Assembly (NCBI GenBank): GCA_965235115.1 | Contig: OZ249445.1 | Coordinates: forward strand, 14,012,001-14,076,000 | Source: Laetmonice hystrix | Taxonomy: Eukaryota | DNA: 64,000 bases | Direction: 5' to 3' | In this document: positions 60,001 to 62,378 of the stretch, one piece after another | How the letters are laid out: each line of letters begins with the position of its first letter | Numbering within the stretch: position 1 is the stretch's first letter | Notes under the pieces: model-generated | What the model was told of the DNA's origin: nothing | Database searches by the model: none | What the model saw: the letters and a program-made list of their open reading frames with translations, nothing else | Position numbers and translations under genes: made by a program

Positions 60001-62378
60001 GAGTGCATAACATTGCTATGGATCATATATCAATAAAAATATTGGCTAGGACTTTATTTTTCAGGTATTGAGTCATGTTACTTTTATTATTTTGAGACTC
60101 TGACAGCTTTGGAGGAGATCCGAAGTCAGTGGATGACCTACTGGAGCAGGTCCAAGAGCTGTGGTCAGTTCTCCAGCGGCATTCAGTCCCGCAGGCTGGT
60201 GTCCAGGACGGACAGGTCCTCACTGACCACCTCCCACACTGGTCAGCTGTCACTGGGTGGTCCCAACTCCTCCTCCTCTGGTCAATCCATTCTCTATACC
60301 TTAGGCCTGGAATGCACGCGCTGACCCTGGAGCCCGCCCTCTGGGCTCAGAAAAGATTTATGGATGTTTTCCTGACTTCATCTAGTCACCACGCTGATCG
60401 CCAGAGTGAAAGTCAAAGATTAATGGAAGCAAGGGGGAGGGGGGACCAGAGTCAAAGATTAATGGAAGCAAGGGGAGGGTGGACCAGAGTCAAAGATTAA
60501 TGGCACCAAAGCCAGGGGAGGGGGTTCTTTAGGTTACTGACCACTTGCACCCGTCTTGCACTGACCAAAACAAGTATGTAGCTGTCTGGGGGGCTGGCTG
60601 GCTGGCTGAGATTTCCAAGCTGTCAGAGGTCTGGACGAGTCTCACAGACTTTTTCCCCAGCATAACTTCTTCTGGATGGCCCCATATCACCTGATATTTC
60701 TTCTTTGTGTTATAAATTTAACTTTGTTTGGAATGTACAACCAGCGGGTTCGCTGTTTGATTCAGGATATCCCTGAGTCAGTACTGGTGTAACATTAACT
60801 GAATTTAACAGTTACCGGTACTCTCAGGCAGACAATCGTTTACTTCAACCAGAGCCGTTTGTGGCACTTTATACAATGAAACCAACCACATGTCTGATGG
60901 TCAGACACCGTGGCAGATACGGGGGGGGGGGGGGGTACCCGGAAATAATAAGTCATACCCACATGCCATTATTACTTAAACATCATCTGAGGAGAACATA
61001 CCGTCTTTGGTAAAGTCAATTGTCCAACTATAACAAAATGTGTAGGGGGCCTACATCAGCTGCAGGATTTCCTTCTGGTCATAAATACTAAAATATTATA
61101 TGGGCAGAATTCAAAATCAAGAATATTTTCTGCTGGACAGGGGCATACAACATGTACGTGTTATCTTTTCCTCTGATAGGTTATACACCAAAGCACTTAC
61201 TTGTTCTACAATGGGGTAACCTTGCCGCAGACAGCCCCCAATTTACTATACTACTAGCGTTTCACCCTCTGCCTGTTACACGGTGTAAAGGCCAGGTCCG
61301 ATGACCCTAACATACATGAATTACAAGACGTATTTGGTCATGTGCACACCTCTCTGCTCTATATGATCATTTAATGAGTGATAATATCGGGGTTACAGTC
61401 TCCCACGCACACCTCAAAGGTCAATGGCATGCATGAACGGTCAGCAACTACAGGTACCTTCACGGACCACTAACTATACATGGACATGGAATGGAACAAT
61501 CCAGTGATTTCTCTAACATGTCCTTAACCTCTTAACTTCTAATAAACATTAAAAACTTAACAATGTATGATTTCTGTATCCTTTGTCTGCTCTGGTACGG
61601 TGTATATATAGGTTCAGCAGTCAAACAATGGTTAGTATGGAAAGCTGGTCAGACTGGCCAGGAGAAGGCCTCTTTGTAATGGGGGGTTGGGGGCGGTTCA
61701 CCTTAAAACAGAAATACAAGGTAAGCACAGGACTCCACTTTAACATGAGACCATTACCGTATGAACTTTTCACCCTGCAGTTTCACTGTACATGTCTAGA
61801 GCATGTCTAAAACCTGTGTATAAATTAGTCACCAAGCAACATGTCGGGGAATGAGTCAACCTACTGTGATTCCATTGCAAAGAGACTATGCAAAGAACAT
61901 GTAAATTACAATGTCTTACAATATATGCATCAAATGTAAATTCACGTCAAATTGTATTACAGCATGAAACCACATTATCAAACCAACTCTTCATAAATTA
62001 ATGTCCACTAAAATTACCGAAATCTTGTATTTAGGACATCAAACCTTTACTTACCGCTTCAGAAACCGGAAGGGGGGCAGCCACCACTTCTTCTTCCATC
62101 TCAGTTTCCTCCTCGCCATCCTCTTCTTCCTGTGCAGCCGCTTCGCTCTCTTCCTGCTGCTTCCTTTCTTCCTCTTCCTGCTTGGCACGTTCTTCAGCCT
62201 CCTTGGCAAGGCGCTTTCGCTTGTCAGCTGGTGGTTCTTCACCGACTTTCAGAGATTTTCCATCGAAAGCGTCTGGAACATACCCAAACACATTACTGTT
62301 CAAAACTCGAGGCTTTGGTCGTGGGGATCCCACACCGCAAAATATACTGTCTGTTGGGCTGTCACTTCTTTCTGCCAT
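1..62378 (-). CDS. DPYS: Dihydropyrimidinase / CRMP-family gene, multi-exon, 3' end beyond the left edge of the window
   Basis: Exons 34317-34361 (or 62055-62378), 11537-11631, 9028-9101, 5363-5473, 4728-4892, 4383-4525, 4093-4161, 3427-3547 or 2813-2933, 1341-1497, 639-780, 335-418 and 1-15 join in one open frame through AG/GT boundaries with matching phases. The protein carries amidohydrolase motifs DTHTH, NSFK, VHAENG, VVHVMS and TGTDNC. Orthology to DPYS versus the CRMP paralogues cannot be split; invertebrates commonly have one such gene. Confidence 0.96.
335..418 (-). CDS. DPYS: DPYS/CRMP exon ([28 protein letters not shown])
   Basis: 84 nt, acceptor TTTTTACACCAG, donor GTTGGT, phase 0/0; conserved [16 protein letters not shown] motif. 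Confidence 0.96.
639..780 (-). CDS. DPYS: DPYS/CRMP exon ([47 protein letters not shown])
   Basis: 142 nt, acceptor GAATGTTTCAG, donor GTAAGC, phase 2/0; contains the catalytic Asp motif GTDNC and IPNG. Confidence 0.97.
808..1213. repeat. Minisatellite, 25-27 bp unit (TACGTCATGTAACATCAGAGTGACACA), about 15 copies
   Basis: Directly visible tandem copies with +/-AG indel variants; fills most of the 560-nt intron 781-1340. Confidence 0.95.
1341..1497 (-). CDS. DPYS: DPYS/CRMP exon ([51 protein letters not shown])
   Basis: 157 nt, acceptor GGATTGTAG, donor GTAGGT, phase 1/2; family motifs [14 protein letters not shown] and [10 protein letters not shown]. Confidence 0.97.
2813..2933 (-). CDS. 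DPYS: Mutually exclusive exon B, CRMP-like ([41 protein letters not shown])
   Basis: 121 nt, acceptor CTGTTGTGTTCCAG, donor GTAAGG, phase 0/1, open frame; paralogous to 3427-3547, with Arg at the metal-ligand His position. Confidence 0.9.
3427..3547 (-). CDS. DPYS: Mutually exclusive exon A, dihydropyrimidinase-like ([41 protein letters not shown])
   Basis: 121 nt, acceptor GGCCCCACAG after a long T-rich tract, donor GTAAGT, phase 0/1; keeps the metal-ligand His in VVHVMS. Confidence 0.94.
4093..4161 (-). CDS. DPYS: DPYS/CRMP exon ([23 protein letters not shown])
   Basis: 69 nt, acceptor CTGTTACAG, donor GTGAGG, phase 0/0; [13 protein letters not shown] motif. Confidence 0.97.
4383..4525 (-). 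CDS. DPYS: DPYS/CRMP exon ([47 protein letters not shown])
   Basis: 143 nt, acceptor TTTATTGATTGTAG, donor GTCTGT, phase 1/0; carries the carbamylated-Lys motif NSFK and the His motif VHAENG. Confidence 0.97.
4728..4892 (-). CDS. DPYS: DPYS/CRMP exon ([54 protein letters not shown])
   Basis: 165 nt, acceptor GGTCGTTCCAG, donor GTAGAG, phase 1/1; WADxKVCCDYxLHV motif. Confidence 0.97.
4981..5106. mobile_element. Short MITE-like inverted-repeat element, family B, copy 1
   Basis: About 38-bp terminal inverted repeats (GGGCCCGGTTCATAAACAAAGTCAAGTCA... / ...TTGACTTGACTTTGTTTGTGAACTGGGC); near-identical copy at 19146-19273. Confidence 0.8.
5363..5473 (-). CDS. DPYS: DPYS/CRMP exon ([36 protein letters not shown])
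   Basis: 111 nt, acceptor GTGTGTCTGTAG, donor GTCAGT, phase 1/1; HxH metal-binding motif and [10 protein letters not shown]. Confidence 0.98.
5810..6587. repeat. Minisatellite, 34 bp unit (CCCCACCTCAAACACCCTCACACTTGGGTCCAAG), about 23 copies
   Basis: Visible tandem copies; generates the repetitive ORFs 5752-6665 in the track. Confidence 0.97.
7280..7490. mobile_element. 211-bp MITE, family A, copy 1 (PIF/Harbinger-like by TAA duplication)
   Basis: About 44-bp TIRs AGTGCTGAACCCACCAAGGCGATTCCCCTTGCGAC... / ...GTCGCAAGGGGAATCGCCTTGGTGGGTTCAGCACT, flanked by TAA (7277-7279) and TAA (7491-7493); second copy at 16475-16685. Confidence 0.88.
9028..9101 (-). CDS. DPYS: DPYS/CRMP exon ([25 protein letters not shown])
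   Basis: 74 nt, acceptor TTTGTGTTTATAG, donor GTAAGT, phase 2/1; matches the family QIG.NL..PGG..TI.A.G..VIPG segment. Confidence 0.96.
11537..11631 (-). CDS. DPYS: DPYS/CRMP common second exon ([31 protein letters not shown])
   Basis: 95 nt, acceptor CACGTTGTTTCAG, donor GTAAGT, phase 0/2; [23 protein letters not shown] motif. Not represented in the ORF track in this frame. Confidence 0.97.
12411..13090. repeat. Tandem repeat, 89 bp unit, about 7.6 copies
   Basis: Unit TACAAGAGGCGGGTCCAGTAAATGAAAGACTGAACGTACAGTTACGTTGAGACATGTATCTGTGGGTAGATTGTGATTGTCTGATGTGG; source of ORFs 12385-13161. Confidence 0.96.
15916..16224. mobile_element. MITE-like element, family C, with nested inverted repeats and G-runs
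   Basis: Outer TIRs CCGGTGTCCCAATTTCAAATTACCCCCC / GGGGGGTAATCTGAAATTGTTACACCGG; inner pair AAGCTAGCTTCAAATTACCCCCC / GGGGGTAATTTGAAGCTAGCTT; central GGTTAGGGTT motifs. No clear TSD. Confidence 0.75.
16475..16685. mobile_element. 211-bp MITE, family A, copy 2
   Basis: Same orientation and length as 7280-7490 with only a handful of substitutions; left flank TAA, right flank ATA (duplication imperfect). Confidence 0.88.
17496..17561. repeat. Short direct duplication, about 32 bp x2 (GCCATGGCACAGCTAATTATGGTATCTTTCCTC)
   Basis: Two adjacent near-identical copies visible. Confidence 0.8.
18017..18335. mobile_element. 319-bp non-autonomous DNA element, CAGGG...CCCTG termini, 5-bp TSD (family E)
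   Basis: TIRs CAGGGTTCCCAC / GTGGAAACCCTG; repeated internal CCATGACTTT(T) motifs; flanked by CAACC at 18012-18016 and 18336-18340. Confidence 0.82.
19146..19273. mobile_element. Short MITE-like element, family B, copy 2 (128 bp)
   Basis: TIRs GGGCCCAGTTCACAAACAAAGTCAAGTCAATTTTAATT / AATTAAAATTGACTTGACTTTCTTTGTGAACCGGGCCC; near-identical to 4981-5106. Confidence 0.82.
22038..22124. repeat. Direct duplication, about 42 bp x2 (ATGAATGAGCCCCTCTGTACTGTTTCCTGGTTGTATAGTAGG)
   Basis: Two adjacent copies with two substitutions. Confidence 0.85.
24536..24707. repeat. Direct duplication, about 86 bp x2
   Basis: CAGAAAACACAATAAGTCACGGTAGAAAAGATAGGGGAAATCAC...CATCTGTGGGGATC present twice in tandem. 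Confidence 0.9.
27514..28042. repeat. Minisatellite, alternating 41/43 bp units (84-bp higher-order dimer), about 12 units
   Basis: Core CTCTACCTGCCCACACCTTGGACTGTGGGT followed alternately by CTTACCTCTCC or GTGACCTCTCTCC; degenerates rightwards. Confidence 0.95.
29804..30929. repeat. Minisatellite, 51 bp unit, about 22 highly similar copies
   Basis: Unit GATCGTAACTCACTTCATCTGGTGATATCTAACTCCAGAGTCTGGCCCCCT; explains the 369-aa ([17 protein letters not shown])n ORF. Confidence 0.97.
34317..34361 (-). CDS. DPYS: DPYS/CRMP short first coding exon ([15 protein letters not shown])
   Basis: ATG in CCAAGATGG context, 45 nt, donor CAG|GTATGT, phase 0 into SAQSRLL; [10 protein letters not shown]|SAQ matches the invertebrate CRMP N-terminus as I recall it from Drosophila. 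Implies a 22.7-kb intron. Confidence 0.9.
46900..47208. repeat. Minisatellite, 44 bp unit (AACCGTAACCTTCCCATATACTGGGACATAACCGACGTCTCTAT), about 7 copies
   Basis: Visible tandem copies. Confidence 0.96.
54007..55140. repeat. Minisatellite, 46 bp unit (GGAGGCGTGACTCTCACCCTCTCCATCAATCAGTCCTGGTAGGACT), about 24 copies
   Basis: Visible tandem copies with degenerate edges. Confidence 0.97.
56180..56399. mobile_element. 220-bp non-autonomous DNA element, CAGGG...CCCTG termini, 5-bp TSD (family D)
   Basis: TIRs CAGGGGCGGATCC / GGATTCGCCCCTG; internal direct repeat TTGACTGGTTTCCA (56204-56217, 56347-56360); flanked by AATAC at 56175-56179 and 56400-56404. Confidence 0.82.
57454..58675. repeat. Minisatellite, 64 bp unit, about 19 copies with layered variants
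   Basis: Unit GGGCCTACAACCAGCCAAACAAAATCAGCAATGAGCCTACTAAAGTCCCACTACATCTGACAAT. Confidence 0.97.
60092..60352 (-). pseudogene. Possible decayed coding fragment of unknown origin
   Basis: GC-rich third positions and protein-like text ([42 protein letters not shown]) interrupted only by TGA and TAG codons; no family recognised. Confidence 0.4.
60413..60503. repeat. Short tandem repeat, about 39 bp x2.3 (AGTCAAAGATTAATGGAAGCAAGGGG...GGACCAG)
   Basis: Visible tandem copies. Confidence 0.8.
62055..62378 (-). CDS. DPYS: Probable long alternative first exon of DPYS/CRMP (108 aa, [48 protein letters not shown]...PVSEA)
   Basis: CCACCATGG start context, open frame, donor GCG|GTAAGT in phase 0 (compatible with exon 11537-11631), same strand as the gene, acidic/basic helical tail, and N-terminal resemblance to vertebrate long CRMP isoforms. 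The splice link itself is inferred. Confidence 0.75.

Follow-up and report, generated by a model that had tools for sequence, protein, structure and literature searches.

A conserved coding exon far upstream in the only DHP/CRMP gene of Laetmonice hystrix and its likeness to the N-terminus of vertebrate long CRMP isoforms

The locus described here raises the question of whether an open reading frame (ORF) lying far upstream of the dihydropyrimidinase (DHP)/CRMP gene of Laetmonice hystrix is a coding exon of that gene, and whether the peptide encoded by it is related to the N-terminal extension of the long CRMP isoforms (L-CRMPs) of vertebrates. The window, i.e., the whole stretch of DNA that was analysed, comprises 64,000 nucleotides (GenBank assembly GCA_965235115.1, contig OZ249445.1, positions 14,012,001 to 14,076,000 of the forward strand), and positions are given within this window unless a contig is named. 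As described below, the ORF is, with good confidence, a genuine and conserved coding exon of the only DHP/CRMP gene in this genome, and it would supply the N-terminus of a long isoform transcribed from a putative promoter above the ATG at 62378.

When the minus strand was read directly and translated from 62378 to 62055, we found an ORF of 108 codons (MAERSDSPT...PLPVSEA), and the assignment of 62055..62378 (minus strand) as the long-isoform coding exon of the DHP/CRMP gene is based on this ORF, on its homologues and on its presence as a single copy in the 627-Mb genome. The proposed start codon (62376..62378, minus strand) is read as tccaccATGg in the context of TCCACCATGG, an in-frame stop is located 6 codons upstream of it, and Met1 is shared by 96% of the homologues in the alignment. 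At its other end, the exon closes on a complete codon and is directly followed, after 62055, by a 5' splice site GTAAGT in phase 0 (62049..62054, minus strand), which was read directly and is also marked by an RNA junction and by read-through of the donor in homologues. The DHP/CRMP gene lies downstream on the same minus strand, and its exons, again read directly, encode the DHP fold. Its short first exon has a coding part of 15 residues in phase 0 with a GTATGT donor (34317..34361, minus strand), while the common exon 2, also in phase 0, is found at 11537..11631 (minus strand) with its acceptor CAG at 11634-11632. The long exon is 27,694 bases away from the short first exon and 50,424 bases away from the common exon 2, and no Pfam match was obtained for the ORFs, 97 to 140 residues long, in the interval that separates the two first exons. 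With its 108 residues replacing 15, the long exon would extend the protein by 93 residues net.

Evidence for splicing of this exon came from X4, which is one small run of the same sample and behaves as cDNA; no run recorded as RNA covers the stretch. An X4 contig (contig 24, 2111 nt) aligns to 62055-62272 only, with 0 mismatches and with spliced continuations on both sides, and a portion of 218 nt of the exon (62055..62272, minus strand) is accordingly present in spliced RNA. The loose end of this contig at 62055, which reads GCCCTTGATGAGCAAGCGAGACTGCGCACT on the plus strand, has as a 30-mer one occurrence in the window and one in the 627-Mb genome, namely at 11602-11631, where exon 2, read on the minus strand, opens with precisely these 30 bases. 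Exon 2 being the unique target of the loose end, the donor at 62055 is spliced to the common exon 2, i.e., it joins the acceptor at 11631 in RNA, and it follows from this junction that the long exon is owned by the DHP/CRMP gene. A retrocopy as the origin of the spliced contig was also considered but ruled out, because the long exon is single-copy in the genome.

The initial annotation of this DNA, made from its letters alone, had described a distant first exon with a perfect start context, 108 codons and a GTAAGT donor in the phase needed, placed upstream of the short first exon and of exon 2, at distances of 27.7 kb and 50.4 kb, respectively, and belonging to the CRMP gene, with no other gene in between. 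Each of these elements was found on the minus strand, the distances agree with our counts, and the ownership is borne out by the junction from 62055 to 11631; the same junction and the lack of Pfam matches in the intervening ORFs speak for the empty interval. The description as a distant first exon stood in part: an upstream alternative exon joined to exon 2 in RNA is there, whereas first-exon use from the ATG at 62378 is not what the sole RNA contig displays, since in this contig the exon begins at an internal acceptor (62272).

Conservation of the exon was examined by a single-sequence phmmer search with the 108-residue peptide as the query, run exhaustively against 1.84 billion representatives of a library clustered at 50% identity. 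The proposal to look for the exon in related invertebrates proved fruitful: 48 protein relatives matched at E<=1e-3 and 11 of them at E<=1e-10, the best one with an E value of 1e-39 and 84% identity. Nearly all matches are ORFs of 69-223 residues on eukaryotic contigs, are of the first-exon type and begin with Met. The core of this family can be written as [IV]-x-[LC]-G-x-G-S-P-[RK]-P-x-[PS]-R-(6)-F-G-[HY]-V-x-D-A-F-[DE]-x-K-[ST]-[LI]; it corresponds to residues 12-47 in the window exon and is followed by an acidic stretch in the homologues, many of which end with P-x-P-V-x-E-A and then V-S, i.e., a GT donor read through. In the family alignment (A1, P0001-P0068), from which P0029, a 650-aa repeat protein matching in 9 short stretches, was excluded as a spurious match, P21, R24 and F31 are invariant, while M1, G15, G32, V34, D36, A37, F38 and K41 are at least 90% conserved, and the window exon keeps all of the invariant and near-invariant columns. 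The mean identity of the homologues to the window exon is 0.54 for residues 11-35 and 0.58 for residues 36-50. At the position of S18-P19 in the window, the family has Ser in 88% and Pro in 81%, and a basic patch at the start of a predicted helix, for which the initial annotation had suggested a possible nuclear signal (KRKR), is only moderately conserved, with Lys or Arg in 40-50% at residues 53-54 and in 21-31% at residues 55-56. The window exon therefore shares with the family the Met start, the core motif, the acidic middle and the P-x-P-V-x-E-A end, but its Tyr33 and Val30 are replaced in most members by His and Met, respectively. No Pfam family exists for the long exon, a profile search of the PDB returned noise only, and a search of the ESM Atlas gave no match.

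In other species, furthermore, the extension was found on CRMP-like proteins. Transcript contigs encode full-length CRMP-like proteins in the case of P0028 and P0049 (705 aa each), P0052 (707 aa) and P0068 (709 aa). In P0028 and P0052, which were read, the long N-terminus is followed by an Amidohydro_1 body; alignment A2 shows P0049 to be 100% identical to P0028, and P0068, which was the only match found with residues 1-62 of P0052 as the query (75% identity), has the same recorded Pfam domains as P0052. Because in-frame stops are present upstream of Met1 in the contigs of P0028 and P0052 (L008 and L007, respectively), Met1 is the true start of these proteins. In genomic contigs of two further species (L009 and L012), an exon-2-like exon with LLIRGGRVVNDD or SAQSRILIHGGRIVNDD comes after the N-terminal exon and is on the same strand; in one species, the exon-2-like exon reads LLIRGGRVVNDDVSFDADVY and is 1.5 kb downstream of the N-terminal exon, and in the other, it reads SAQSRILIHGGRIVNDDFSF and is 5.6 kb downstream. 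When P0052 was used as a query against the L. hystrix genome, the DHP/CRMP-like matches were all at the one locus described here, and the DHP/CRMP gene in the window is the only such gene of the genome. It retains the H-x-H zinc ligands (GGIDTHTH). Two versions of a DHP exon were also seen at 3422-3697 and 2739-2951 of the window (minus strand), with His versus Arg at a zinc-ligand position. As for the long exon itself, DNA contigs revealed three polymorphisms in it (62073, 62283 and 62289, in codons 102, 32 and 30, respectively), all three of which are at synonymous third positions; the flanks have many substitutions and indels. We regard the ownership, the coding status and the invertebrate conservation of the long exon as solid.

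How far the likeness to vertebrates extends was then a matter of comparing the family with L-CRMPs, in which about 100 residues are added through an alternative exon (PMC7325199); the offset of CRMP2A relative to CRMP2B is 101 residues (S623 vs S522). Residues 21-33 of human CRMP2A are CNLGSGSPKPRQK with phospho-S27 (Table S1 in PMC13288452), and S27 is an isoform-specific Cdk5 site that switches the binding of FKBP12 and Pin1. This peptide scored 22 bits against a position-specific scoring matrix of the family core, a value that was reached by 3 of 200,000 shuffles and by 1 of 200,000 random peptides. In HMMER, LGSGSPKPRQK was aligned to vGsprPqPRvl of the profile with 8.9 bits and an E value of 1e-4 (for a search space of one sequence, Z=1), an alignment that pairs P28 and R31 of the human peptide with the invariant residues P21 and R24 of the family; in an alternative register, shifted by two residues, human S27-P-K-P-R falls on S18-P-R-P-K in the window. 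The likeness to a vertebrate long N-terminus, as claimed in the initial annotation, was in this way recovered for residues 21-33 of human CRMP2A only. The two vertebrate strings quoted there, of which the first ten residues alone are verified, were aligned without gaps at profile positions 21-39 and 34-47 with 16.2 and 12.5 bits, keeping the spacing R-(6)-F-x-x-V, and the best shuffles of them attained 8.4 and 3.5 bits (1,159 and 1,622 scored of 2,000 each). A literal search of papers for the vertebrate motif strings found none. No vertebrate protein was reached, either, by word-indexed protein searches with A1 (among 8000 candidates of low complexity), with A2 (dominated by DHP-domain words) and with residues 1-62 of P0052.

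In their layout, vertebrate L-CRMP1/CRMP1A, CRMP2A and L-CRMP4/CRMP4b/TUC-4b resemble the window gene in that an alternative upstream exon for about 100 residues is joined to the same common exon of a DHP-fold protein, and CRMP2A also shares a Ser-Pro-basic-Pro-basic pentapeptide (SPRPK in the window, SPKPR in human). They differ in that the extension in L. hystrix belongs to the one DHP/CRMP gene that the genome has; this gene keeps the zinc ligands together with the His/Arg exon switch and is therefore not a dedicated non-enzymatic paralogue. The middle of the window exon would, furthermore, form an acidic/charged helix, whereas the middle segments of vertebrate long CRMP N-termini are rich in Gly, Ser and Arg.

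Several points nonetheless weigh against a long isoform that starts at 62378 and is akin to those of vertebrates. The vertebrate side of the comparison consists of 13 verified residues of human CRMP2A and of the largely unverified strings quoted in the initial annotation; its register is ambiguous by two residues, with human S27-P28 on either S18-P19 or R20-P21, and the taxonomic spread of the invertebrate relatives is inferred from their divergence only. As for the transcript, the X4 contig reveals a different 5' structure. It diverges exactly at an internal 3' splice site, ttccAG/AC (62273..62274, minus strand), which is inside codon 36; after 62272, directly behind ttccAG, it continues with 32 other letters, 30 of which have a single genomic occurrence (C11:14078814-14078843, minus strand) and are followed there by GTAGAG. 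This places an upstream leader exon of the DHP/CRMP gene, joined to 62272, at L001:1501-1532 (G000:C11:14078814-14078845, minus strand), 4.5 kb upstream of the internal acceptor and about 2.8 kb past the end of the window. The observed transcript hence runs from the leader exon to 62272, through 62055, and into exon 2. The X4 depth on 62273-62547 is zero, and therefore neither the start codon nor any other of the first 35 codons is seen in RNA; no transcription start of the proposed promoter at the ATG at 62378 was observed, either. When the leader, 62272-62055 and exon 2 were scanned for ATGs and ORFs, no in-frame ATG was found before Met94 (gagATGg at 62097..62099, minus strand), which would be the first main-frame ATG for a transcript entering at 62272. 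An ATG in the leader opens an upstream ORF (uORF) of 7 codons that crosses the junction before it ends; another uORF begins at 62263. A transcript of the leader form is without the start codon and half of the motif, and would be translated from Met94 at best.

It could be argued, then, that the exon in this species is only an internal, mostly untranslated leader segment (62272-62055) expressed from a promoter shared with the gene for ribosomal protein L15 (RPL15), and that the frame from the ATG at 62378 is an unexpressed relic. Such a relic would be in line with the path of the X4 contig and its zero depth on 62273-62547, with the uORFs in the leader and with the location of the leader exon, which is 1.8 kb from the RPL15 start codon and on the opposite strand. 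The first 35 codons are, however, intact and include the family-invariant P21, R24 and F31; they are about 80% identical to P0001, an ORF of a related species, and the two polymorphisms within them are synonymous. The conserved core, moreover, straddles the internal acceptor, with G15, G17, S18, P21, R24, F31, G32 and V34 on the one side and D36, A37, F38 and K41 on the other. Also, absence cannot be demonstrated with a single small run of a single sample, and rare forms are lost from Logan contigs. We consider the relic quite improbable; codons 1-35 are probably coding despite their absence from the RNA, and the use of the exon as a first exon rests on this conservation. A chance ORF or an exon of another gene, which is the remaining explanation of the frame as a whole, has a negligible probability and was ruled out by the homologues, reaching an E value of 1e-39, and by the X4 junction to CRMP exon 2, there being no other recognisable gene between.

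The exon could, on the other hand, be what it appears to be among invertebrates, namely a lineage-wide long-CRMP exon, with a vertebrate likeness that is due to convergence or to a common proline-rich short motif and not to descent. The phmmer search over the 1.84 billion representatives agrees with this, having returned short first-exon ORFs and one full-length CRMP-like protein but no match with a sign of vertebrate origin; so do the small number of verified vertebrate residues, the low HMM score and the description of the N-terminus of C. elegans UNC-33L as non-conserved (PMC7159925). Clustering of the library at 50% identity may, however, hide long isoforms behind short-isoform representatives. 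Convergence would also have to account for the same position in the gene, i.e., an alternative upstream exon of roughly 100-114 codons that leads in phase 0 to an exon with S-x-x-R-L-L-I-K-G-G, which is comparable with the offset of 101 in CRMP2A, as well as for a verified CRMP2A peptide that outscores all but 3 of 200,000 shuffles and for quoted strings that align ungapped, in a consistent register and with the R-(6)-F-x-x-V spacing kept, none of the scored shuffles coming near. Convergence or a common short motif thus appears rather unlikely to us. We lean, if only slightly, towards the view that the long N-terminal module is a bilaterian-wide linear-motif region of DHP/CRMP genes, ancestral to the N-termini of vertebrate L-CRMPs including the Cdk5/Pin1/FKBP12 switch at S27 of CRMP2A, and that it was already present on a single gene still encoding an active dihydropyrimidinase.

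If the exon is a genuine long-isoform exon, as we consider very probable, the following course of expression can be proposed. An alternative promoter just upstream of the ATG at 62378, which would probably be neuronal, would make the long isoform in some tissue; the phase-0 GTAAGT donor of the exon is spliced over 50.4 kb to exon 2, and the 108-residue N-terminus would replace the short one of 15 residues. The linear motifs in this N-terminus would then act as a phospho-regulated handle for docking and localisation, as in vertebrate L-CRMPs and UNC-33L. The X4 contig directly shows a further use of the exon, namely by transcripts that splice from the leader exon into 62272.

The predicted structure is consistent with such a handle. 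In an AlphaFold2 model calculated with the family alignment, residues 1-49 are coil and residues 50-86 are one long charged helix, with a mean predicted local distance difference test score of 68; a charged helix anticipated in the initial annotation is hence reproduced, as a prediction, at residues 50-86. There is no globular fold in the model, which favours the view that the extension is a disordered, regulatory handle equipped with short linear motifs. As modelled, it is a disordered head carrying a proline-rich Ser-Pro motif, a hydrophobic/acidic motif, a basic patch leading into the charged helix, and a conserved P-L-P-V-S-E-A end. Phospho-switching and docking would probably be the roles of the Ser-Pro motif and the F-G-x-V-x-D-A-F-D-x-K-S-L motif.

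In C. elegans, the isoform-specific N-terminus of UNC-33L is a functionally essential docking site that binds UNC-119 and links to ankyrin (PMC7159925), and the mutant is rescued only by UNC-33L (PMC7904166). UNC-33L is similar to the proposed product of the window gene as a long isoform of an invertebrate CRMP with an isoform-specific N-terminus, but differs from it, in a comparison by description and not by sequence, in that its N-terminus is described as non-conserved. According to Morris et al. (2012), the single CRMP gene of Drosophila reportedly gives both DHP and CRMP forms via internal mutually exclusive exons. The Drosophila gene would thus resemble the window gene as one invertebrate gene with enzyme and CRMP roles through alternative exons, while the alternative exons are said to be internal there and not to produce an N-terminal long form.

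Long CRMP isoforms are minor yet functionally distinct; CRMP2A is found in distal axons, and CRMP4b binds RhoA. Their N-termini are treated as poorly conserved. Long CRMP isoforms are known in vertebrates and C. elegans, and what is new here is this exon, in a genome with one undivided DHP/CRMP gene, although genome annotation pipelines may already model such isoforms. In the literature searched, no motif conservation between invertebrates and vertebrates was described for long CRMP N-termini. A core of about 35 residues that is shared by dozens of divergent invertebrate genes and matches the S27 segment of CRMP2A would be a concrete motif to mutate, and it offers a route to asking which partner binding is ancestral. 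If the module is indeed ancestral, a neuron-type regulation of CRMP would have preceded both the duplications of the gene and the loss of its enzymatic activity. One undivided gene that combines a putative long/short first-exon design with a switch between enzyme and pseudo-enzyme exons, furthermore, bears on the origin of CRMPs from dihydropyrimidinase.

Outside the window, the RPL15 gene is located at L006:4635-6036 on the plus strand (G000:C11:14080635-14082036; Pfam Ribosomal_L15e with E values of 6.5e-43 and 1.2e-22) and is arranged head-to-head with the leader exon, with an observed/expected ratio of CpG near 1 between them. The leader exon and RPL15 may share a bidirectional promoter, which would explain why the leader form is dominant in the bulk sample. 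More X4 contigs were noticed at 62859-63364 and 63792-64000, with depths of 15.5, 6.7 and 3.2; these lie in the intron between the leader exon and 62272 and could represent an additional exon, a retained intron or a separate transcript. Also in the surroundings of the long exon, the DNA contigs X1 differ from X2/X3 of the same sample over 58646-64000 by many substitutions and small indels (e.g., 7 bases deleted at 62515 and 6 bases inserted at 61786), and these differences suggest two haplotypes. Long tandem-repeat arrays are present in the introns at 5752-6665 (plus strand), 12385-13161 (minus strand), 27333-28054 (plus strand) and 29825-30934 (plus strand); they contain ORFs that consist of repeated units and extend to as many as 369 codons, and they look like minisatellites, not genes.

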